A stretch of DNA of 64,000 nucleotides from the sequence record NC_019521.1; one strand, written 5' to 3'. Of this stretch, positions 6,439 through 63,500 are shown in pieces. The notes beneath the pieces were generated by a model, which saw nothing but the letters and a program-made list of their open reading frames with translations, was not told the DNA's origin and ran no database searches. The position numbers were made by a program, and so were the translations under genes. Numbering within the stretch: the stretch's first letter is position 1; the number at the start of each line of letters is the position of its first letter.

Positions 6439-9400
6439 ATGGCTACTTCAGGATCATTTACTGGAAATAAGGACGATAGTTCACCTGACATCACGGCTGT
6501 TATGTTAAATGGTTTTACTGGTTTAATGAATACGTTAAAAAAGAATCATGAAACTGTAAATAACATAAGCGAAACGTCTGAAGCTATTCTTTCTGAAATT
6601 TCAAGAGGAAACAAAAATCAAAACTTAGAAGCTAAGATTCTTATAAACGCTGTTGCGAAATCATATGATTTAGTCAAGAAAGAAACTAATCCGATACTTA
6701 ACAACATTGTTGAAGCTATAAAGAATATTAGTCTAAATGATGGTACTGTCGTAACCAATAAAGACGGTATTCAAATTGTTAAATGGGATGAAAAACAATT
6801 TCAAGCATTTCTACTAAATAAAGACGATTTACAGCAAGATGCTTCTAAGCAAATAAATTCTATAGAATCTTTATTCAAAACCGTAATAGGAGGATTATCT
6901 GAATTAAAAGAACAATCGAAAGGATTTTCTATTCGAAACATGTTCTCTTCGATATTCGAACCTTCTTTCGTTAAACAGGCTAAAGATTTTACGAAAGCTT
7001 ACAAAGTGGTTATTAACGGTATATCAGCTTCATTGATAACGTTAGATAAAGATTCTAAGAAAATTGAAAGAGCTGGAAATATTCTAACAAGTACTATCGA
7101 AAAAATAAATTCAGCAATTTCTGATAATCCAAATGCTCCAGCATACTTTAAGAAATTAGCTGGAGGTATAGCTTTACTTGGATTATCTTTAACAGCTTTT
7201 GCGTTAGTATCTCCTGCAGTTTTAGTTGCGGTTGGTGCTTTAACTTTACTAAAAGGTGTAACCTTCGTAATGACTAGAACTACTGCTAAAGACATGCTAA
7301 AAATATCAGCAGCTATAGCTTTATTTGGTTTAGCAATTTGGGGATTAAGTGAAATCGTAACTTTAGAATCTACATTAAAAACAGCTACTGCTATTATACT
7401 TCTCGGATTGGCTATCAAGGGATTTACAATGGCTATTGGTACAGGTCTTGGAAGGAATGGTTTAAGAACATTACTATTAACGACAGTTTCTGTAGCAGCT
7501 TTAGGTTTAGCATTACAAACATATAACGATGTAGAATGGGAATCGATGTTGAAAGCTGCTGGAGCGTTAACTGTTCTAACAGGGGCTATGTATTTGATAT
7601 CTAAAGTACCTAGTGCTAGTGTTGGTAGTTTAGCTTTATTAGCTGGAGCTGCTGCAATTGGAGCTATAGGTCTAGCATTACAGTTAATGCCAAAGAATAC
7701 AGACATTTATTTACCTGTAGGATTGTTCATTGCTGGATTTGGAACAACATTAGCTTTAGCTGGAACTGTTGCACCATTCATTGCAGCAGGTGCTGCGGCG
7801 ATGTTAGTTGGTGGAGCTGCATTATTAGTAATGGGTGGGGCTTTAGCTGTTATAAATGCTGTAAATTACGATAAAGCTAAAATCGATAGTTTTACTGATT
7901 CATTAGTTTATCTGATAAATTCTATCGGTGATCCAATGTTAATCGCTAAAGCTGTATCAGCTTCATTATCATCTGTACCTATGTTAGCTGTAACTTCCAT
8001 GTCAATGGTGATGGCTTTAGAATTAGCTGCGATAGGAGCTTTAGGATATAACAATGATAACGTAGCTCAATTTGGTGTTGGTGTTACTTTGTTAGCTAAC
8101 GTTCTTGGAAATCCTGTATTAATTGCTAAAGCTTTAGGTGCTACTGTATCAAGTGCTGCATTATTGGCTACAACTTCTATGTCATTAGTAATGGCTTTAG
8201 AATTAGCTGCTATCGGTGCTTTAACGTTCAATCAAGATAATATTGCTGTATTCGGTGAAGGTATGAAAATGTTATCAAAAACTTACATCGATTTAGCTAC
8301 AAGTATTGGAATCATCGGAGCAGCGAAATTAACAGGTGGTGTATTACTAGCTACTGAAATGGCTTTAGCAACACCTCCAATAGCTTTCGCTTTAATGTCA
8401 GTTAGTATAATGTCAAGATTAATCAGTAACGAATCTATTGATAGATTTGATTACGGATTAAACAAATTGATAAAAGTATTCGTTGATAACGCTCCAGCTG
8501 TTCTTAAGAATCGTGAATTACCTAAAGCTGTTAGAATGATACGAGACATGTCAGATTCTACAGTTGGTATTTCCAGAGGTATTAGTGAATTTGTTAAGAT
8601 AGCTGACAAACCAGATTTAATCAATACTGCTGTAACAGGTGTTGGGGATTTCGTTGATAGAATGATTACTATCTTATCAGATAAAGGTCAGTTACTAGCT
8701 TCATTACCTAAAGATGCTATGAGAATCCTAGGTCTAGGTAATCTAATGAAAGACATAGCAGACGGAATGGTTTCTATGGGTAAGTTGGAATATTACGAAA
8801 CTAAGTTAGTTGATGGTCAGATAGTTAAGGTTGGACAAGCTAAGAAATTTACAGCTGCAGATTTCCAAGAAGTTGGAAAATCTATCGATCTATTCATATC
8901 AGCTGTATCAGAACCTTTAGCTAAAATAGGTGACCAAGGAGGATTATTCTCTTCGAACAAAACTAAGAAAGGTATTCAAGCTTTATCAGATATAGGTAAC
9001 GTATTCAATCCAATCATAGGAATTGTTCAAGCTTTCAAATTGGGTGAGAAACAGATAACTAACGATGACGCTATAGAAATAACACAAGTTCTTAATACTA
9101 TCATATTTGGTATATCTTCTACGTTTACTAAACTTGAACAAGATGGAACTTTAGAATATTTCAATACTGAATCGGTTATGATGAAAGGATTATCTGACGT
9201 ATTCAAATCGTTAGGAGGTCTTAAAGGTGATGAATTAAATAAAGTTACTAAAGAAATCAATACAGTATTCGATCGTATAGCTGACGACAAACCATTCAAT
9301 AAACTTATAACTAATCTTGGAAAGATTCGTAAAGAAGCTACAATGATTAAGAATGAGGTTAACAAATTCGATTTGACTAAGCTAACAATGTTTAATCAAA

Positions 9401-35668: not shown

Positions 35669-35676
35669 TATACATA
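35669..35676 (+). promoter_or_regulatory. Late promoter box TATACATA
   Basis: 29 nt before the baseplate operon. Confidence 0.7.
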
Positions 35677-35705
35677 CCTTAATACTAATAAATCCGTATT
35701 AAGGT

Positions 35706-36377
35706 ATGCTATCTTTAAACCCAAGAACTGACCTCCCCCAATTTATATTTGATGATAAGTTTTGGATTCCTTCTATTTGTCAGAAATATGACAGGTTTCT
35801 AAAAGCTAAAGAATATCCTATCGATGATATTCGTGAAGTGGTTGCGGAATCATTAAAGTCTTGGGAAATTCCAGGATTATCTCAAAATCTTATAACACAA
35901 CCCCAATTTACTGGTGACGGTGATTTACCAAATGATGTAAATATTCCCGGATACGAAAACAAACGTAATGCTCAAGGTAAAACATTGACATTGACATTTA
36001 GAATGACTGATGGTCTTATAAATTGGTCATGTTTATTTGAACATTTCTGGGCTAAATTGAATGTCGAAAAGAAACTAGTATATTCAGATTTTCCAGTAAT
36101 AACAAGAAACATGTACGGTTCGAAAATGTTCACCATGATATTTAAGGGTGCTATATTCGAATCTATAGACGGATTCGGTGTCGATTATTCTAATTTCGAT
36201 AGATCGTATAAAGAATTTACATGTACCTGGCAATTGGATAAATTCGAAATCGATTTCGTACCACCATTCCAAGACGTTAAAGGTTATGATGATAAGTCTA
36301 ATTCAGTATTCGATATAGACTATGACCATTCAGAACCTTATATTTGTCCAACTCCTAAACCTAGTCTTCCGAAATAA
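35706..36377 (+). CDS. Tail-tube-fold baseplate protein (gp54/gp48-like)
   Basis: Late box at 35669. LTLTFRMTDG...FKGAIFESI...FTCTWQ resembles tube-fold proteins. Precedes the gp53-like gene. Confidence 0.5.
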   Translation: MLSLNPRTDLPQFIFDDKFWIPSICQKYDRFLKAKEYPIDDIREVVAESLKSWEIPGLSQNLITQPQFTGDGDLPNDVNIPGYENKRNAQGKTLTLTFRMTDGLINWSCLFEHFWAKLNVEKKLVYSDFPVITRNMYGSKMFTMIFKGAIFESIDGFGVDYSNFDRSYKEFTCTWQLDKFEIDFVPPFQDVKGYDDKSNSVFDIDYDHSEPYICPTPKPSLPK

Positions 36378-51796: not shown

Positions 51797-52824
51797 ATGT
51801 CTAAAAATAATCTAACAGTTGCTCAAAAAGTAAATGCGCTTGTTGAGTCACATATCAAAACAAAATTGATTCCAGTTTTACAAGAGAATCAAAAACAAAT
51901 GTTTGCGATGATCGATCAACATCTTATGGAGAACTTCGGTCCTGCTGTAGTTGCTTTCATTAAAGGTAAAGGTCAAGCTCTTAACGAATCTCAAAACGAA
52001 GAGATTACAAATTCTTTCCGTAATTTCCTTTTGGAAAATGCTGAAGAGGATGTAGCTGAAGAAGTTAAAGAACTTGAAGATAAACTTGAAGACAAGAAAG
52101 AAGAACTTGAAGATTTGAAACTTGAAGAATCTAAACTTGTTAAGAAAGCTAAAGCTTTAAACGAAGCTAAGGATGAAGCTCACGAAGATGAGGAATTATC
52201 TGAAGAAGAAGAAGAAGAAATCATTGATGAAATCGAACTTCAAGAATCTTTGAATACTAAATCACTTACTAAAGTTCGTCGTAAAATGAAACTTGTTGAA
52301 AGTGAATTGGAAGAAATCGCTGACGAATTACAAGATTTAGGTGCTATGGCTACTGAAGATACTGGAATTCCAGCTGATGAAGTTGAATTATCTGAAGAAG
52401 AATTGGAAGAGCTTGAAGGTGAGGAACTTTATGAAGCTTTGAAAACTCGTGTTGCTAAGAAAAGTAAACGTAATGGTAGTCTTTTAGAATCTATCAAAAA
52501 CGATATCGCTAAAGCAAAACGTCTTGACGCAAAAAAAAAGTAAACAAGCTTAACGAAAACGTTAACGAAGATACTAACGTTCTAAAAAATATTCCTGATG
52601 AATTTAAAGCTTTATATGAATCTTTAAGTCCTGAAGCGAAAGATGTTTTAAACGAAAATGCTAGAAATGCTAACCTTGATACGTTATCAGGAGTTCGCAA
52701 CTTCTTTCAGAATACAAACTTCAAAAGCTTACAACAACGTAATGCTTTGAATAAGTTAAATGAAAGTCAAGAAACTAAGCAATCTGGATTAGCGTTTGTT
52801 ACTAACTTACTTAAACCATTTTAA
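51797..52824 (+). CDS. Prohead scaffold (gp22-like); 248 aa to the stop at 52543, about 342 aa with a -1 shift at A9 (52531-52539)
   Basis: Acidic coiled coil with many L-x-E motifs, between protease and capsid. The -1 frame stays open to TAA 52822-52824 and encodes KLNEN, LYES, VLNEN, KLNES. Confidence 0.75.
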
Positions 52825-52865
52825 TTTGTATGCAAGTTTGACATTATTTTTATAAATCAAACTTG

Positions 52866-52873
52866 TATACATA
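52866..52873 (+). promoter_or_regulatory. Late promoter box TATACATA
   Basis: Before the major capsid gene. Confidence 0.75.
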
Positions 52874-52914
52874 TAAAAACAAAAATTAATTACTTACATA
52901 AATCAAAGAAAACA

Positions 52915-56986: not shown

Positions 56987-58267
56987 ATGAAACAATTTAC
57001 GTTGCAGGAGCAATCAATGCTTGATTTACATAACTTAGGTCATTCGGTTTCAGAAATAGCTGATATCATTTTTGAAACTGACAATAACGAAAAATTCACT
57101 CGAGATCAGTTACGTAGAAAAATTCGAAGAATACTAAAAGTACATAAAACTTCTCTAAACTCCGAAAAAGAAAACTTAAATCGTTTCAAGTCTGAAAATC
57201 CAGACATATACGAAGCGTTACTTGAAGAATGTGAAACTGCCGGACTAGATATAAATCTTGTCAATCATTTCTGGTATAAGTCAGAAAACTTCTCGATTAA
57301 CATGTCATCAGCTAGGAAAACTAATGACGAAATTCTCAAAGACTTTATAAGTTCAGTTTCTAAAATCGTTAAGAACATTAAAGCTGAAGCTGATACTTCA
57401 GTTTGGGATAACGTTTACAAAGCTAAAACTTTTCAGTTAGAATCGTATTCTGATGAGAAATCTGGTAAGTTATTAGTACCTTCGATATTCGATTTACATC
57501 TTGGTAAACTTGCTGATTTCGATGAAACTGGTGAGGAATACAACTACAAAATAGCTATTGAACGTTTCAATAACGCTATTGATGATTTAATACAAAAGAC
57601 TATTTCTTTTAATCCTGAAAGAATACTATTTCCAGTAGGTAACGATTTATTCAATTCTGATAAAGCTTTCCCATATTCTCAAACTACTGCTGGAACCCCA
57701 CAACATGATGATTTACGATGGCAAAAGATGTTTGTTCTAGGAAGACAATTAATATCGAATGCGATAACAAAACTTTCTGTAATAGCACCCGTTGATGTCG
57801 TTACTGTATTTTCTAATCATGATCATGAAAGGGTATTTTATCTAGGTGATGTTTTAGAAGCTGTATTTAGTAATAACGAAAGAGTAACTGTAGATAACTC
57901 TCCAAAGGGTAGAAAATACTATCAATGGGGTAAATGCATGATAGGTTTAGCACATGGTCATAATGAAGCTGTAGATAGACTACCACTTCTAATGGCTCAA
58001 GAACAACCTAAAATGTGGGCTGAGACTTATTATCGTGAGTGGTTATTGGGACATTTACATCATAAGAAAAAGTATATGACGGAACAAACTAAAGATTACA
58101 ATGGTGTAATAGTTACGTTTCTATCATCATTAAGTGCTACTGATGCTTGGCATTATTCTAAAGCATTTTCAGGTTCTATTAAATCAGCTGAAGCTTTCGT
58201 TTACGATAAGATACATGGACATGTTGGTACAGCAGTTCATAGCATTTATAACGAAATGACAGCTTAA
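56987..58267 (+). CDS. Calcineurin-like metallophosphoesterase with N-terminal HTH-like region
   Basis: DLHLG, GNDLFN, SNHD, LAHGH, GHLHH. Late box at 56955. Confidence 0.8.
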   Translation: MKQFTLQEQSMLDLHNLGHSVSEIADIIFETDNNEKFTRDQLRRKIRRILKVHKTSLNSEKENLNRFKSENPDIYEALLEECETAGLDINLVNHFWYKSENFSINMSSARKTNDEILKDFISSVSKIVKNIKAEADTSVWDNVYKAKTFQLESYSDEKSGKLLVPSIFDLHLGKLADFDETGEEYNYKIAIERFNNAIDDLIQKTISFNPERILFPVGNDLFNSDKAFPYSQTTAGTPQHDDLRWQKMFVLGRQLISNAITKLSVIAPVDVVTVFSNHDHERVFYLGDVLEAVFSNNERVTVDNSPKGRKYYQWGKCMIGLAHGHNEAVDRLPLLMAQEQPKMWAETYYREWLLGHLHHKKKYMTEQTKDYNGVIVTFLSSLSATDAWHYSKAFSGSIKSAEAFVYDKIHGHVGTAVHSIYNEMTA

Positions 58268-59073: not shown

Positions 59074-59112
59074 AAGCCTCATATGAAAACATGTGAGGCT
59101 TTTTAGTATAAT
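59074..59112 (+). promoter_or_regulatory. Hairpin-embedded promoter GAAAAC-N16-TATAAT
   Basis: AAGCCTCATATG/CATGTGAGGCTT arms, then TAGTATAAT. Upstream of the exonuclease. Confidence 0.6.
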
Positions 59113-59147: not shown

Positions 59148-59828
59148 ATGAAAATCGTATCCTATGACATCGAAACAACGGGTGTCAGTAAACAAAATGA
59201 CAATCAAATTCTAGAACTTGGATTTGTATTGTTCGACACTGATTCTAAAGAAAGACCAACTTTAGAAAACTGTCCAACTTTGAATCTTCGTATCATTCAT
59301 CATTTCATTTCTGGTAACCCATTCGCTTTGAATATGAATAAGCAACTTATCGAAGACTTATCATTCTATTTGAATAATGCTAACAGATTCAAGAAATCAC
59401 CTGAAACGTTTACAGAAGAAGAATACAAAATCATGGATTTGTATGTCGAATTAGAAGGTGTTCATGAAATCGTAGCAACTTGGCTTAAAGCTAATGGAGC
59501 CTATCATGAAGGTGAAAGATCGTTCAATATAGCTGGAAAGAATTTAGCTGGATTCGATATTCCATTCTCTGAAAATACTATTCCTGGATGGAACGATTTT
59601 ATAAGAGCTAAACGTAGGACAATTGATCCAGCTGTTTTCTATGTATTACCTACTGACACTTGTGTACCAAATCTTGAAGAATGTAAGAAACGTTCAGGAT
59701 TATTCGAGGATAATGTAGTTACACATAACGCAGTTGAAGACGCTTTAGATGTTGCTGTATTGGTTCATAATCAATTCAATGTAATGTACGACTTATCAGA
59801 AGGTTCGTATACCACTACAAGAAAATAA
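59148..59828 (+). CDS. DEDDh 3'-5' exonuclease
   Basis: YDIETTG, AGKNLAGFDIPF, HNAVEDA. Confidence 0.9.
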   Translation: MKIVSYDIETTGVSKQNDNQILELGFVLFDTDSKERPTLENCPTLNLRIIHHFISGNPFALNMNKQLIEDLSFYLNNANRFKKSPETFTEEEYKIMDLYVELEGVHEIVATWLKANGAYHEGERSFNIAGKNLAGFDIPFSENTIPGWNDFIRAKRRTIDPAVFYVLPTDTCVPNLEECKKRSGLFEDNVVTHNAVEDALDVAVLVHNQFNVMYDLSEGSYTTTRK

Positions 59829-59834
59829 CAACCT

Positions 59835-59875
59835 ATCATGTTTCGTGAGAGTATACATATCTCATGAAACATGAT
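59835..59875 (+). promoter_or_regulatory. Hairpin sequestering the resolvase ATG, with late box TATACATA (59852-59859) in its loop
   Basis: 16-bp stem 59835-59850/59860-59875 with one G.U pair. ATG 59864 is in the 3' arm. Confidence 0.7.
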
Positions 59876-60559
59876 TTAACCAGACATATTGGAATCATCG
59901 GTATCGATGCTTCTTATAATTCAAGTGGAATTTGTATTCGTTTCTTCGATAAGAACAAGAAAGAACAATTTCACTTATATCGTTTATTTCCCGATTACGA
60001 TAAAAAGAAAAACTCAGTACATATCAAATGTCTGACATATCCTAAAGTATATACAGAAACTAAAGATTTTGAAATCGATGATTTAGGTAAGATCGAAAAC
60101 TGTAAACGTATTACATTAACTATCAAGAATCTAATGGATAGATATGAAAAAGAATTCGATATCAAAGCTTGGGATATTAGATTTGAAGGTAACGTAATGA
60201 ATTCATTCGGTGGTGGTTTACTTAGAATAGTTGATATGGTGAACTTAACTGGTATTCTAAAAGCTAATCTTATCAATAAGAAATCAGTTGGTTCTGTTTA
60301 CGCTATTCTAGAACTTAAGAAATTGTTCTGTGGTCGTGCTAGACCAGCTACAATTAAATGTCCTAAAACTGGAAAACGTAAACCTTCTGAAGATTCTAAA
60401 ATGATGATGATAAATAAGTTCTTAACTATTTATCCAGATTTCGATACTACTGGAAAAATCGATGACGTTATTGACGCTTACGCTTTATCTACAGTACCAT
60501 TGAAACATTCAGAAGATAAACTTAGAAAACTAACCGAATACATTAAATCTTTAGAATGA
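59864..60559 (+). CDS. RuvC-like Holliday junction resolvase
   Basis: IIGIDAS, IRFEG, ELKKLFCG, KIDDVIDAYA. Confidence 0.7.
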   Translation: MKHDLTRHIGIIGIDASYNSSGICIRFFDKNKKEQFHLYRLFPDYDKKKNSVHIKCLTYPKVYTETKDFEIDDLGKIENCKRITLTIKNLMDRYEKEFDIKAWDIRFEGNVMNSFGGGLLRIVDMVNLTGILKANLINKKSVGSVYAILELKKLFCGRARPATIKCPKTGKRKPSEDSKMMMINKFLTIYPDFDTTGKIDDVIDAYALSTVPLKHSEDKLRKLTEYIKSLE

Positions 60560-61482
60560 TGATTAATAGGAGAATAGCAATAGTAGTCCCATTCTGGAAT
60601 CTATCAGAAACGAGGTATAAAGCCTTGCAAATCTGTTGGGCAAACTTAGAGAATCTTAAGAAATCGTTTGACAAATCTAAATTCGATTCAGAACTTGACA
60701 TATTCAATTTTAACTTGTCTTCAACTAAAGAAAATGAAGCCAACGGTCTAAGAATAGATTCAACGATAGATTTAGTAGTTGATAAAGTATCTACCAGTTT
60801 TGATAAATCTATACGAATAAACGAAATGATAATGTATATCAAAAATCTTGGATATGATTTCGTAATGATGATGGATTCTGACATACTGATAGACCGTAAT
60901 TCGTATTCTAAGCTTTTCAAAATATTCAATACTTCAAACGTTAACGAACTTTATAAATTTAACATGGTAAGAACGTCTGAAAAAATTTACAAAGAATTCG
61001 ATAAAAATGGATTATTCTTACATGACTCGTATAAAGATAGTAAAGATATTTGTTTATGTTTAAATTCTGAAAATAAGAAAACTAGATATATAACAGGTAT
61101 TGACGGAGACATTTTTTTCAATATAGATAGATTTATCAAAGCTGGTGGATATAACGAGAATTTTAAGGTATGGGGGTTTGAAGATTGCGAATTTGTAAAA
61201 AGATTTAAATCTGATATCGATAATAAGGTAAGGAATTCGATGATTACTATTGCACATCTTTGGCATGTTACGCATACTTCGACAGCACCAGTCGAAGAAA
61301 ATGAATATGCTAAACTACAGGTAAGGTATTTTAGAAACGTTGAAAAGTTTATGAAAAAGAACAAAGGATCGAAAATCATTTATTCAGCATTTAATTCTGA
61401 TATCGTACCGACTATAGAATTTAAACATTCAATATCAAATTCAAGATACAAAATTTCTTCGTATCTATCATTAAACATCTAA
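60556..61482 (+). CDS. GT-A glycosyltransferase (GT2/GT7-like)
   Basis: IAIVVPFW, DSD motif, FIKAGGYNENFKVWGFEDCEF, HLWH. Confidence 0.85.
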   Translation: MMINRRIAIVVPFWNLSETRYKALQICWANLENLKKSFDKSKFDSELDIFNFNLSSTKENEANGLRIDSTIDLVVDKVSTSFDKSIRINEMIMYIKNLGYDFVMMMDSDILIDRNSYSKLFKIFNTSNVNELYKFNMVRTSEKIYKEFDKNGLFLHDSYKDSKDICLCLNSENKKTRYITGIDGDIFFNIDRFIKAGGYNENFKVWGFEDCEFVKRFKSDIDNKVRNSMITIAHLWHVTHTSTAPVEENEYAKLQVRYFRNVEKFMKKNKGSKIIYSAFNSDIVPTIEFKHSISNSRYKISSYLSLNI

Positions 61483-61499
61483 CAAAGTTTTAGTATAAT
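61472..61499 (+). promoter_or_regulatory. Early/middle promoter TAAACA-N16-TATAAT
   Basis: Upstream of the second glycosyltransferase. Confidence 0.6.
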
Positions 61500-61507
61500 A
61501 TCTTTAT

Positions 61508-62488
61508 ATGAAACTATCAATAGCTCTAACAATTCCATTTTGGAACGTACATAAATCAGAAAAAGAAAGATCAGAAAACATAGGATATTGTATGAAATCC
61601 TTGAACAAATATGCTAAATGGCATAATGAACGTTCTAAGAATACAAAACTAGATATCATACTTTGTAATATGGGTGAGGAAGTTCATCCATTATATCCTG
61701 AAGCTAGATTCTATCAACATACTGGTTTGAAATATCGTTTCGAAAAACCAACTAGAATGAATACATTGTTTCTAGATTTAGATGAATATAAATTCGTTGG
61801 TATGTGCGATCCAGACTTAATAGTTCTTGAAAGCAATTATGAACGTTTATTCGAAACTTTAGAATATGAATTAGATTTAGACGTAATGCTTACATATTCT
61901 TTCGTCAGAACAAAACCAGAGTTACGTGAACTTATATCAACTTCAGATTTTGAAACTCAACATTTAGAAAATCATCCATTAATTTTAGAAGCTAATCGAT
62001 ATTCTGAAGCTTGGGGAATCTGTGGAGGTATATTTTTCATGGGTCGTGAAGCTTTCATAAAAGTTGGAGGATTCAATGAAGAATATCGAGTTTATGGAAT
62101 GGACGATGTTGACTTTACTAATAGATTTCTGTTAAACGATTATATCGTTAAGAAGTTTCCTGAAGTATTGTTTCATCACTTATTTCACCCTAGAACTTTA
62201 GAAAATTCAGATGAAGCTGAATTGGAAAGATATAAACAGGAACTTACTTACTGGTATATCAATAAGAAAAACTTTGAAGAACAAATAGAAATTCCAAAAT
62301 CTGATAGACTTGTAAGAAATCATATTTCTGAAAGATTCTTAGAATTAGCTAAACGTGATGAAAACTTCTTAGAACATGAAGTTAAATTTACTACAGATTT
62401 AACAAAATTCGATCTAACTAGATTCCCAGAAAAATTCCAAAGACAAATAGGAATTCTTAAAGATGATCCAAATAAATTTTACGGATAA
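61508..62488 (+). CDS. GT-A glycosyltransferase (GT2/GT7-like)
   Basis: TIPFW, DPD, GGFNEEYRVYGMDDVDF, HHLFHP. Confidence 0.85.
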   Translation: MKLSIALTIPFWNVHKSEKERSENIGYCMKSLNKYAKWHNERSKNTKLDIILCNMGEEVHPLYPEARFYQHTGLKYRFEKPTRMNTLFLDLDEYKFVGMCDPDLIVLESNYERLFETLEYELDLDVMLTYSFVRTKPELRELISTSDFETQHLENHPLILEANRYSEAWGICGGIFFMGREAFIKVGGFNEEYRVYGMDDVDFTNRFLLNDYIVKKFPEVLFHHLFHPRTLENSDEAELERYKQELTYWYINKKNFEEQIEIPKSDRLVRNHISERFLELAKRDENFLEHEVKFTTDLTKFDLTRFPEKFQRQIGILKDDPNKFYG

Positions 62489-62504
62489 GACCAAAACGAA
62501 ACAT

Positions 62505-63500
62505 ATGAAACATATTGCATTTACGATTCCATTTTGGAATGTAGGAAACGAAAAAGAAAGATTAGAAAACATAGGATACGTTAAACGTTCTTGTGACAAT
62601 TTCGCAGACTATTTCAACAAAAACAATAAGAACGATTTCAAGATAGATGTAATCCTAGCTAATCTTGGTGAAGAAATCAATCCGTTATATCCTGAAGCTA
62701 GATTCTATCAACATACTGGTTTAAAATATCGTTTCGAAAAACCAACCAGAATGAATACTTTGTTTCTAGATTTACTAGAAGAAGGATATGATTTCGTTGG
62801 TATGTGTGATCCTGATATCATACTATTCGAAGAATACTTTGAGAAGCTAACTAAGAATATCGAAGATAATCTTGATTATTTCTCAATGCTTACATATTCT
62901 GTAGCAAGAACAAAACCGGAATTACGAAAGGATTTAATTCTAGAAACTAGAGAATTTCAACATCTTTCAAATCATGAACTAATTATCGAATCTAATGCAC
63001 AAGCTGAAAACTGGCGAGTTTGTGGTGGTGCTTATTTCATGTCATTAGAATTCTTCCGTGATTTAGGAGGATGGAACGAAGATTACAGAGTTTATGGAAT
63101 GGACGATGACGATTATACTTTCAGATTCGAATTAACTGGTGGTAGCGTTGTAACAGATACATCGATTATTTGGCATCATCTTTGGCATCCAACAGTATTG
63201 GGTACAGCACCTGATTACGAATTAGAAAGATACGAATATGAATGCATGTATCGTAGACTTTCTAAGGATGTTTATGAAGAACAAATCAAATCGCATCTGT
63301 GTGATAGAACTAATCGATTGGAGCATCTTTCTGATAGATTCAATAAAGCATATAGTTATCCAGATTCATTCATTAAAGCTGCTAAGACTAACAATGTATT
63401 CAGTTACGAAATCGGTAAAAGGTCTATCGAAACTATGCCAATCGAAATCAAACGTAAATTGGGATTAGTTAATGATGATAAATTTTATGGTTCTTGTTAA
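62505..63500 (+). CDS. GT-A glycosyltransferase (GT2/GT7-like), paralogue of the upstream gene
   Basis: TIPFW, DPD, GGWNEDYRVYGMDDDDY, HHLWHP. ATG 62505 preferred over 62463. Confidence 0.85.
   Translation: MKHIAFTIPFWNVGNEKERLENIGYVKRSCDNFADYFNKNNKNDFKIDVILANLGEEINPLYPEARFYQHTGLKYRFEKPTRMNTLFLDLLEEGYDFVGMCDPDIILFEEYFEKLTKNIEDNLDYFSMLTYSVARTKPELRKDLILETREFQHLSNHELIIESNAQAENWRVCGGAYFMSLEFFRDLGGWNEDYRVYGMDDDDYTFRFELTGGSVVTDTSIIWHHLWHPTVLGTAPDYELERYEYECMYRRLSKDVYEEQIKSHLCDRTNRLEHLSDRFNKAYSYPDSFIKAAKTNNVFSYEIGKRSIETMPIEIKRKLGLVNDDKFYGSC

Follow-up and report, generated by a model that had tools for sequence, protein, structure and literature searches.

A late-class promoter box in the loop of a hairpin that covers the start codon of a RuvC-like resolvase gene in phage PAU: a probable T4-type translational switch

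Here, we describe a strong RNA hairpin that buries the start codon of gp168, the gene for a candidate Holliday-junction resolvase of Sphingomonas phage PAU, and that carries a late-class promoter box in its loop. The features of this locus suggest that gp168 is probably controlled by a promoter-dependent translational switch of the type known from phage T4, in which long transcripts would contain the hairpin and remain silent, and transcripts started at the loop promoter would lack it and be translated. The window analyzed, a stretch of 64,000 nucleotides, is 100% identical to the corresponding part of the PAU genome (NC_019521.1; 219,372 bp); window positions equal PAU positions minus 62,000 (window 59864 is PAU 121864) and are used throughout unless marked as PAU positions. 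The PAU host strain HER1398 was later reassigned to Sphingobacterium, that is, to the Bacteroidetes (PMC3738902). The host phylum is relevant because ribosomes of Bacteroidetes do not employ Shine-Dalgarno pairing, and initiation instead responds to the local structure of the mRNA and to A-rich sequence lying upstream (PMC6847099).

Direct reading of the sequence at positions 59835–59875 reveals 16 consecutive pairs, 15 Watson-Crick and one G·U (G59845 with T59865), enclosing a 9-nt loop (59851–59859; GTATACATA). The box TATACATA in this loop is separated by a 4-nt spacer (TCTC) from the gp168 ATG at 59864–59866, which lies within the 3′ arm (Table 1). RNAfold predicts a free energy of -23 kcal/mol, against a mean of -9.0 ± 2.4 kcal/mol for shuffled sequences (z -5.9; 0 of 200 shuffles equally stable), with the AUG paired at a probability of 1.0 in the long RNA, and the two arms were also recovered as inverted repeat I18 in an inverted-repeat search. 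When the opening cost, i.e., the energy required to free the start-codon region, was computed for all 286 plus-strand ORF starts of PAU, gp168 ranked first, at 17.9 kcal/mol, with a median of 1.5 and a 99th percentile of 10.2. The hairpin is real, correctly placed, and far beyond chance expectation. An earlier note on this DNA, made from the letters alone, had described a 16-bp stem with one G·U pair over ATG 59864 and a 9-nt loop holding a box 4 nt before that ATG, and both parts of this description are borne out, the stem by direct reading as well as by RNAfold.

Several other readings of the same stretch were rejected. An intrinsic terminator was dismissed because no U tract follows the stem, either in PAU or in any of the 4 homologues described below. 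An upstream mini-ORF of 9 codons (ATG 59838 to TGA 59865–59867, overlapping the gp168 ATG) was considered as a coupling uORF and judged incidental because it results from the CATG of the palindrome and is missing from two of the homologous loci, L004 and L006. An ATT or another downstream start of gp168 was discarded as well, given that there is no in-frame ATG ahead of the catalytic GID motif and that the ATG is kept in all 5 genomes.

Table 1. Features of the gp168 locus and related elements, in window coordinates
Feature	Position	Strand	Remarks
AGTATAAT-type copies in the window	28606, 29508, 32822, 40747, 54756, 56173, 59105, 61492		about 45 more across PAU
gp127 element	35669..35708	+	late box 35669–35676; 13-bp stem, 35673–35685 with 35696–35708; ATG 35706
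Intrinsic-terminator-like hairpin ending the gp163–gp166 unit	59074..59101	+	12 pairs, then T run; inverted repeat I15
Putative class-2 (early/middle-type) promoter for gp167	59083..59112	+	-10-like AGTATAAT at 59105–59112
gp167, DnaQ-like 3′-5′ exonuclease	59148..59828	+	phrog_192, E 2.8e-8; Pfam RNase_T, E 7e-4
Hairpin 5′ arm (anti-start-codon arm)	59835..59850	+	present only in transcripts begun upstream
Putative late-class promoter box TATACATA	59852..59859	+	inside the 9-nt loop
Hairpin 3′ arm	59860..59875	+	4-nt spacer, ATG, gp168 codons 2–4
Predicted late transcription start site, at the A of the gp168 ATG	59864..59864	+	from spacing and promoter geometry
gp168, candidate RuvC-fold Holliday-junction resolvase	59864..60559	+	231 aa
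gp169, glycosyltransferase	60556..61482	+	Pfam Glyco_transf_7C

Four close homologues of gp168, with 60–65% identity, are encoded in Logan contigs (L003–L006) and were the only ones found in the databases searched: blastn and tblastn against 50,697 phage records recovered PAU itself only, and scans of IMG/VR and JGI metagenomes yielded no further relatives. The genes upstream of the resolvase differ among the 4 homologous loci, and all 4 keep the arrangement ATACATA-N4-ATG. Clear hairpins are present in 3 of the 4, namely, L003 (15 + 3 bp, -20.5 kcal/mol, z -5.1), L004 (a 10-bp stem with one G·U pair, z -3.6), and L006 (a 10-bp stem, z -3.8), and that of L005 is weak, a 7-bp long-range stem with a long loop (z -1.8); for these hairpins taken together, the combined shuffle p is 2e-6. 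The reading frame upstream of the resolvase gene terminates within or next to the 5′ arm in L005 and L006, where ribosomes translating it could open the hairpin. Among the called genes of each homologous locus, no more than one start costs more to open than that of the resolvase gene (8.4–12.4 kcal/mol).

The 3′ arms of the homologous hairpins vary along with the first codons of the gene (MKHD, MEQIK, MEQ, and MT), the N-terminal residues being the least conserved part of the resolvase protein, and the 5′ arms track these changes. Covariation in homologues, which the earlier note had named as a check, points the same way: in an unedited MAFFT alignment of the 5 genomes, pairing is kept by compensatory changes, with both sides altered in 9 of 17 pairs. 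Among these 5 sequences, 69% of the cells are paired, compared to 27–45% when the partners are slid by 1–3 columns, and 3–4 of 500 shuffles reach the observed covariation values. In 3 of the 5 genomes (PAU, L004, and L005), G·U pairs give the sense RNA a higher stability than its antisense counterpart, and therefore a structure at the RNA level is favored. More distant RuvC-like homologues differ in this respect. Three of them (L014–L016) lack both the box and the hairpin at the gene start, and in a fourth (L013), the box stands 22 nt upstream and its bases pair weakly with the AUG. Given that L014–L016 are devoid of the arrangement and L013 has only the displaced box and a weak stem, the putative hairpin-promoter device is specific to the PAU subclade.

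The assignment of the gp168 product draws on both sequence profiles and structure prediction. Although a Pfam search gave no match, a PHROG search identified phrog_159, annotated as RuvC-like Holliday junction resolvase (E 4.6e-5), and a profile built from 32 homologues of gp168 produced a weak match to RuvC in the PDB (7w8d, E 0.058) through the GID and KK..G.G motifs. Residues D15, E108, D201, and D204 are invariant in the 32 homologues and would correspond to the RuvC catalytic tetrad. In a Foldseek search of the PDB with the AlphaFold (AF2) model of gp168 (pLDDT 93), the best 15 matches all belonged to the RuvC family (E 5e-6 to 7e-4), including RuvC of Thermus, Deinococcus, Escherichia coli, Pseudomonas, and Lactococcus phage bIL67, yeast Ydc2, and poxvirus resolvases, with TM-scores by target of 0.41–0.66 and about 0.6 for the RuvC entries. 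By its modeled structure, then, gp168 is a RuvC-fold enzyme unrelated to T4 endonuclease VII.

The stop codon of gp167, the exonuclease gene immediately upstream, lies 7 nt before the hairpin. On the other side, gp169 is probably translationally coupled to gp168 because its ATG overlaps the gp168 stop codon (ATGA). Three paralogous Glyco_transf_7C genes, gp169–gp171 in PAU (60556–63500), are located 3′ of the resolvase gene in PAU and its relatives. The PAU DNA has been reported to be heavily modified (PMC7824862), so that the products of these genes may be DNA glycosyltransferases.

The box in the loop belongs to a large family of sites. In the whole PAU genome, TATACATA occurs 50 times on the plus strand and twice on the minus strand, and 42 of the 50 plus-strand copies are in intergenic DNA, which makes up 5.5% of the genome; the window holds 15 copies, all on the plus strand, against 6 expected. 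A terminator hairpin stands directly 5′ of many copies. Alignment of the sites uncovers almost no upstream information except for a T just before the box; 3′ of it, a T follows, then the 4th nt tends to be C (17 of 42 sites, against a background of 15%) and the 5th nt A (28 of 42). This preference for A at the putative +1 is not distinctive, since leaders are generally A-rich. All 8 annotated virion or lysis genes that are located directly behind a promoter motif (those for capsid decoration, tail sheath, portal, prohead protease, major capsid protein, internal capsid protein, baseplate module, and endolysin) have TATACATA. By contrast, of the 15 replication and nucleotide metabolism genes behind a motif, 11 have the AGTATAAT class described below and 4 have the TATACATA box only, a split of 8:0 versus 4:11 (Fisher p 0.0013) that was tallied by hand from the motif and annotation tables. 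The 4 DNA-metabolism genes with TATACATA only are gp163 (Mre11-like exonuclease), the RuvC-like gp168, gp174 (UvsW-like helicase), and the gene for NrdF. The box is also found upstream of the DNA-metabolism genes gp41, gp163, gp174, and gp254, which counts against the label “late”; in T4, both uvsW and gene 49 count as late genes. Every related contig fetched has the ATACATA core upstream of called genes. Considering the strand bias, the intergenic placement, the gene associations, and the conserved ATACATA core, we accept TATACATA as a putative late-class promoter box, its lateness being judged from gene content.

A literature search for TATACATA as a phage promoter returned nothing relevant. 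The late promoter of T4 is a single 8-bp TATA-like box located about one helical turn upstream of the transcription start site (TSS), without a -35 element (PMC2988020), and the PAU site has the same layout, that is, a lone 8-bp box with little upstream information except for the preceding T, although the boxes themselves differ (TATACATA in PAU and TATAAATA in T4). The promoters of the host lineage provide another comparison. The -7 element of Flavobacterium johnsoniae is an 8-mer at -12 to -5, separated from the TSS by 4–5 nt, and the Bacteroidetes element, TAHHTTTG, is characterized by T-12, A-11, and T-6, with little information at -35/-33 (PMC6847099). The PAU box resembles this element in its length, the initial TA, the lack of an upstream consensus, and the implied spacing to the TSS, but differs from it at the defining positions (CATA instead of TTTG). 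The host-type box TAHHTTTG was also tried as an early promoter of PAU and rejected because it is not enriched in the intergenic DNA of the phage. Given this lack of enrichment and the difference between the two boxes, a phage-specified specificity factor appears to be implied as the reader of the PAU box. A phmmer search of all PAU ORFs for a homologue of T4 gp55, which is insensitive for this fast-evolving family, gave as its best hit a 65-aa ORF (E 0.003) that is not credible. Separately, gp1 (PAU 94–1182) matches phage sigma factors (phrog_351, E 9e-50; weak Sigma70 r2 and r4), is noted in GenBank as internal capsid vertex protein, and differs from the gp55 type. As a sigma factor carried in the virion and co-injected with the DNA, gp1 could explain why the early promoters look unlike host promoters.

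These early promoters would be represented by a second intergenic motif family with about 55 copies, which reads T(C)GTAGTA(T/C)TAT or AGTATAAT. In most copies, a segment containing GAAAC, frequently the loop of a G+C hairpin, lies ahead of the motif. Members of this family are located upstream of the genes for DNA polymerase, clamp loader, two helicases, ligase, SSB, topoisomerase subunits, NrdH, and MazG, and of many small ORFs. Frequently, the motif merges with a repeated G+C hairpin (about 30 nt, loop GAAACTGAAAC), and the whole looks like a terminator and a -35 region combined. The gp167 gene has such an arrangement at its head: the loop and 3′ side of the terminator-like hairpin at the end of the preceding unit overlap the -35-like part of the next promoter, and a sigma-70-like scan also picks up the motif at this site. 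A terminator scan predicted no terminator between this promoter (59105) and the gp168 hairpin (59835). The presence of this promoter and the lack of an intervening terminator lead us to expect a read-through RNA from the earlier promoter class that contains the hairpin. Motifs resembling the class-2 -10 element also head the resolvase-ending operon in L003, L005, and L006.

With respect to the start of the late transcript, the spacing between the box and the ATG is particularly informative. The arrangement ATACATA-N4-ATG occurs 9 times in PAU, compared to 0–2 times for each other spacing from 0 to 15 and about 1.7 expected (Poisson p 6e-5). Five of these 9 copies are gene starts (gp38, gp168, gp255, gp260, and gp268), and all 5 have a pyrimidine at -1. 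At the resolvase gene, the spacing is 4 nt in 5 of 5 genomes. The RNA starting at 59864 is predicted to have its first 16 nt unpaired and its 5′ AUG free. Taken together, the geometry of the host -7 element, the C/A preference 3′ of the box, the excess of the N4 spacing, and the invariance of this spacing at the resolvase gene place the TSS at the 5th nt after the box, from which we infer that late transcription of gp168 starts at the A of the AUG and yields a leaderless mRNA. The same exact 4-nt spacing is seen at PAU 25070, 179695, 184472, and 198450, the sites of the other 4 genes, and at the gene for a UvsW-like helicase of a relative (L004:9139–9152). The gp255 start directly follows a terminator, so this gene would be served only by a new transcript.

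Leaderless mRNAs, in which the AUG is at the 5′ end, are exemplified by that of lambda cI from PRM. What would set gp168 apart is that its leaderless form is predicted to be one of two alternative 5′ ends and the “on” state of a switch. In Bacteroides and Flavobacterium, leaderless mRNAs are a minority, at 3.7–5.5% (PMC7366714; PMC9723704). We lean toward the broader view that in jumbo phages of the PAU type that infect Bacteroidetes, part of the late program relies on precisely leaderless mRNAs, with the box N4 from the AUG at no fewer than 5 genes, and that the promoter in the loop turns gp168 into a two-state cistron, a T4-type switch independent of Shine-Dalgarno pairing.

The proposed course of events is as follows. 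Transcripts from the early-type promoter at 59105 would cross gp167 into gp168 and carry both arms of the hairpin. In this long RNA, the stem would lock the gp168 AUG, and little or no resolvase would be made, as expected because ribosomes of Bacteroidetes ignore Shine-Dalgarno sequences and require an unstructured start region. Later, RNA polymerase at the loop box would initiate some 5 nt past the box, on the A of the AUG; the resulting mRNA would lack the 5′ arm, have an unstructured, leaderless 5′ end, and be translated. The resolvase, and probably the coupled gp169 product, would thus be made only late, when branched DNA needs to be resolved for packaging. In this scheme, we infer the activity and timing of the promoter, the exact TSS, the silencing of the long RNA, and the leaderless translation from the sequence.

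Alternatively, the hairpin might merely throttle or couple translation, with the loop box inactive and the gp167 transcript as the source of low, constitutive gp168 expression, either through occasional breathing of the hairpin or through re-initiation after the gp167 stop. The short distance of 7 nt between this stop and the stem is compatible with such a scenario, as are the ends of the upstream ORFs in L005 and L006, which lie within or next to the 5′ arm, an arrangement known from classical translational coupling, and resolvases are required only in small quantities. However, in PAU, L003, and L004, the upstream stop is located 7–14 nt outside a stem of 10–16 bp, too far for ribosomes terminating there to free the AUG. 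Moreover, the box and its exact 4-nt spacing are kept in all 5 genomes despite the changing loops and arms, which is hard to explain unless the box is a promoter, and the same spacing recurs at 4 other PAU gene starts, one of them, gp255, directly after a terminator. We therefore consider throttling or coupling alone unlikely, although it deserves more credit than the alternatives discussed next.

The conservation of the hairpin also bears on the possibility that the inverted repeat is an RNA end or processing signal of the upstream gene, such as a factor-dependent terminator, a 3′ stabilizer of the gp167 mRNA, or an RNase III-type site, and that its overlap with the gp168 start is incidental. 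Many intergenic hairpins of PAU are indeed terminators placed directly before a late box. Yet, this element lacks the U tract of the real terminators of PAU, an Rfam search with the hairpin found no matching family, the AUG always falls within the 3′ arm, and the hairpin stays with the resolvase gene whatever the gene upstream, so that an end or processing signal is, in our judgment, very improbable. Least probable of all is an element acting at the DNA level. Such an element could serve as the operator of a dimeric regulator or form a cruciform that exposes or hides the late promoter, and it might even be a target of binding or cleavage by the resolvase itself in an autoregulatory fashion. 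The box does occupy the exact center of a 41-bp near-perfect palindrome, cruciforms are bound by resolvases, and T4 I-TevI binds over its own late promoter and represses it (PMC2988022). It is the complementarity of the arms, however, that is conserved and not their sequence, the reverse of what a protein operator would entail. The arm lengths and loop sizes vary (loops of 4–28 nt), as DNA or as antisense RNA, the G·U pairs of PAU, L004, L005, and L006 would be mismatched, and the higher stability of the sense RNA in 3 of the 5 genomes does not fit a DNA element either.

The promoter-dependent switch that we favor has well-studied counterparts. The statement of the earlier note that T4 silences the long transcripts of e, soc, 49, and I-TevI by hairpins that are absent from the late-promoter transcripts is correct (PMC3014915; PMC2988022), and its proposal that a similar logic operates at a structurally unrelated RuvC-type resolvase gains support from the sequence evidence on box class, read-through, hairpin conservation, and the RuvC fold. 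The closest parallel is T4 gene 49, which, like the candidate gp168, is a Holliday-junction resolvase gene; its long transcripts, begun at upstream promoters, form a hairpin that covers the initiation region, and a late promoter within this hairpin yields a shorter, translated RNA without the 5′ strand (PMC3014915). In our hands, the gene 49 region folds as expected for its hairpin control. The two differ in several respects. The late box is in the 5′ arm in T4 but in the loop in PAU; the T4 hairpin covers both the Shine-Dalgarno sequence and the AUG, whereas that of PAU buries only the AUG and the first codons, in a host lineage whose initiation does without Shine-Dalgarno pairing; the late mRNA of gene 49 keeps a leader, whereas that of gp168 is predicted to be leaderless; and the gene 49 product is endonuclease VII, whereas gp168 has an unrelated, RuvC-like predicted fold. 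More generally, e, soc, I-TevI/II/III, segB, and mobE of phage Aeh1 are late genes embedded in early or middle units, with an RBS-sequestering hairpin that is missing from the late transcripts (PMC2988022; PMC3014915). The described cases of this family are all from T4-like phages of Proteobacteria and depend on Shine-Dalgarno pairing, and none has been described as yielding a leaderless mRNA.

Like the T4 family, PAU appears to have several instances of this design: the second and third most sequestered starts of the genome, gp13 and gp127, respectively, have a layout similar to that of gp168. In gp13 (PAU 7115; element PAU 7067–7120), a 19-bp stem (-27.8 kcal/mol, z -5.7) has the box at the edge of its loop, and the design recurs in one or two of the 3 homologues of this gene. 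In gp127, the 5′ arm begins inside the box, such that a late transcript would miss most of that arm; the long form is predicted to be stable (-16.4 kcal/mol, z -5.8) and the form from the predicted TSS to be unstructured. Searches with the gp13 and gp127 proteins returned no family match.

If the switch operates as proposed, a classic T4 device would reach a giant phage that infects another bacterial phylum and a resolvase whose fold is unrelated, which would argue that premature synthesis of resolvase is strongly selected against in phages generally. The two motif families also provide a working promoter map, with a late TATACATA class and an early AGTATAAT class, for an almost unannotated genome of 219 kb, and predict that a number of late mRNAs are exactly leaderless, in a host lineage without Shine-Dalgarno pairing.

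Two further observations concern other late boxes in the window. At 52819–52879, there is a 23-nt inverted repeat (87% complementary, arms 15 nt apart) with the late box of the major capsid protein gene (52866) in its 3′ arm. The longest ORF of gp163 starts at 56987, 24 nt after a late box, and the GenBank start is 30 nt further downstream (57017; PAU 119017).
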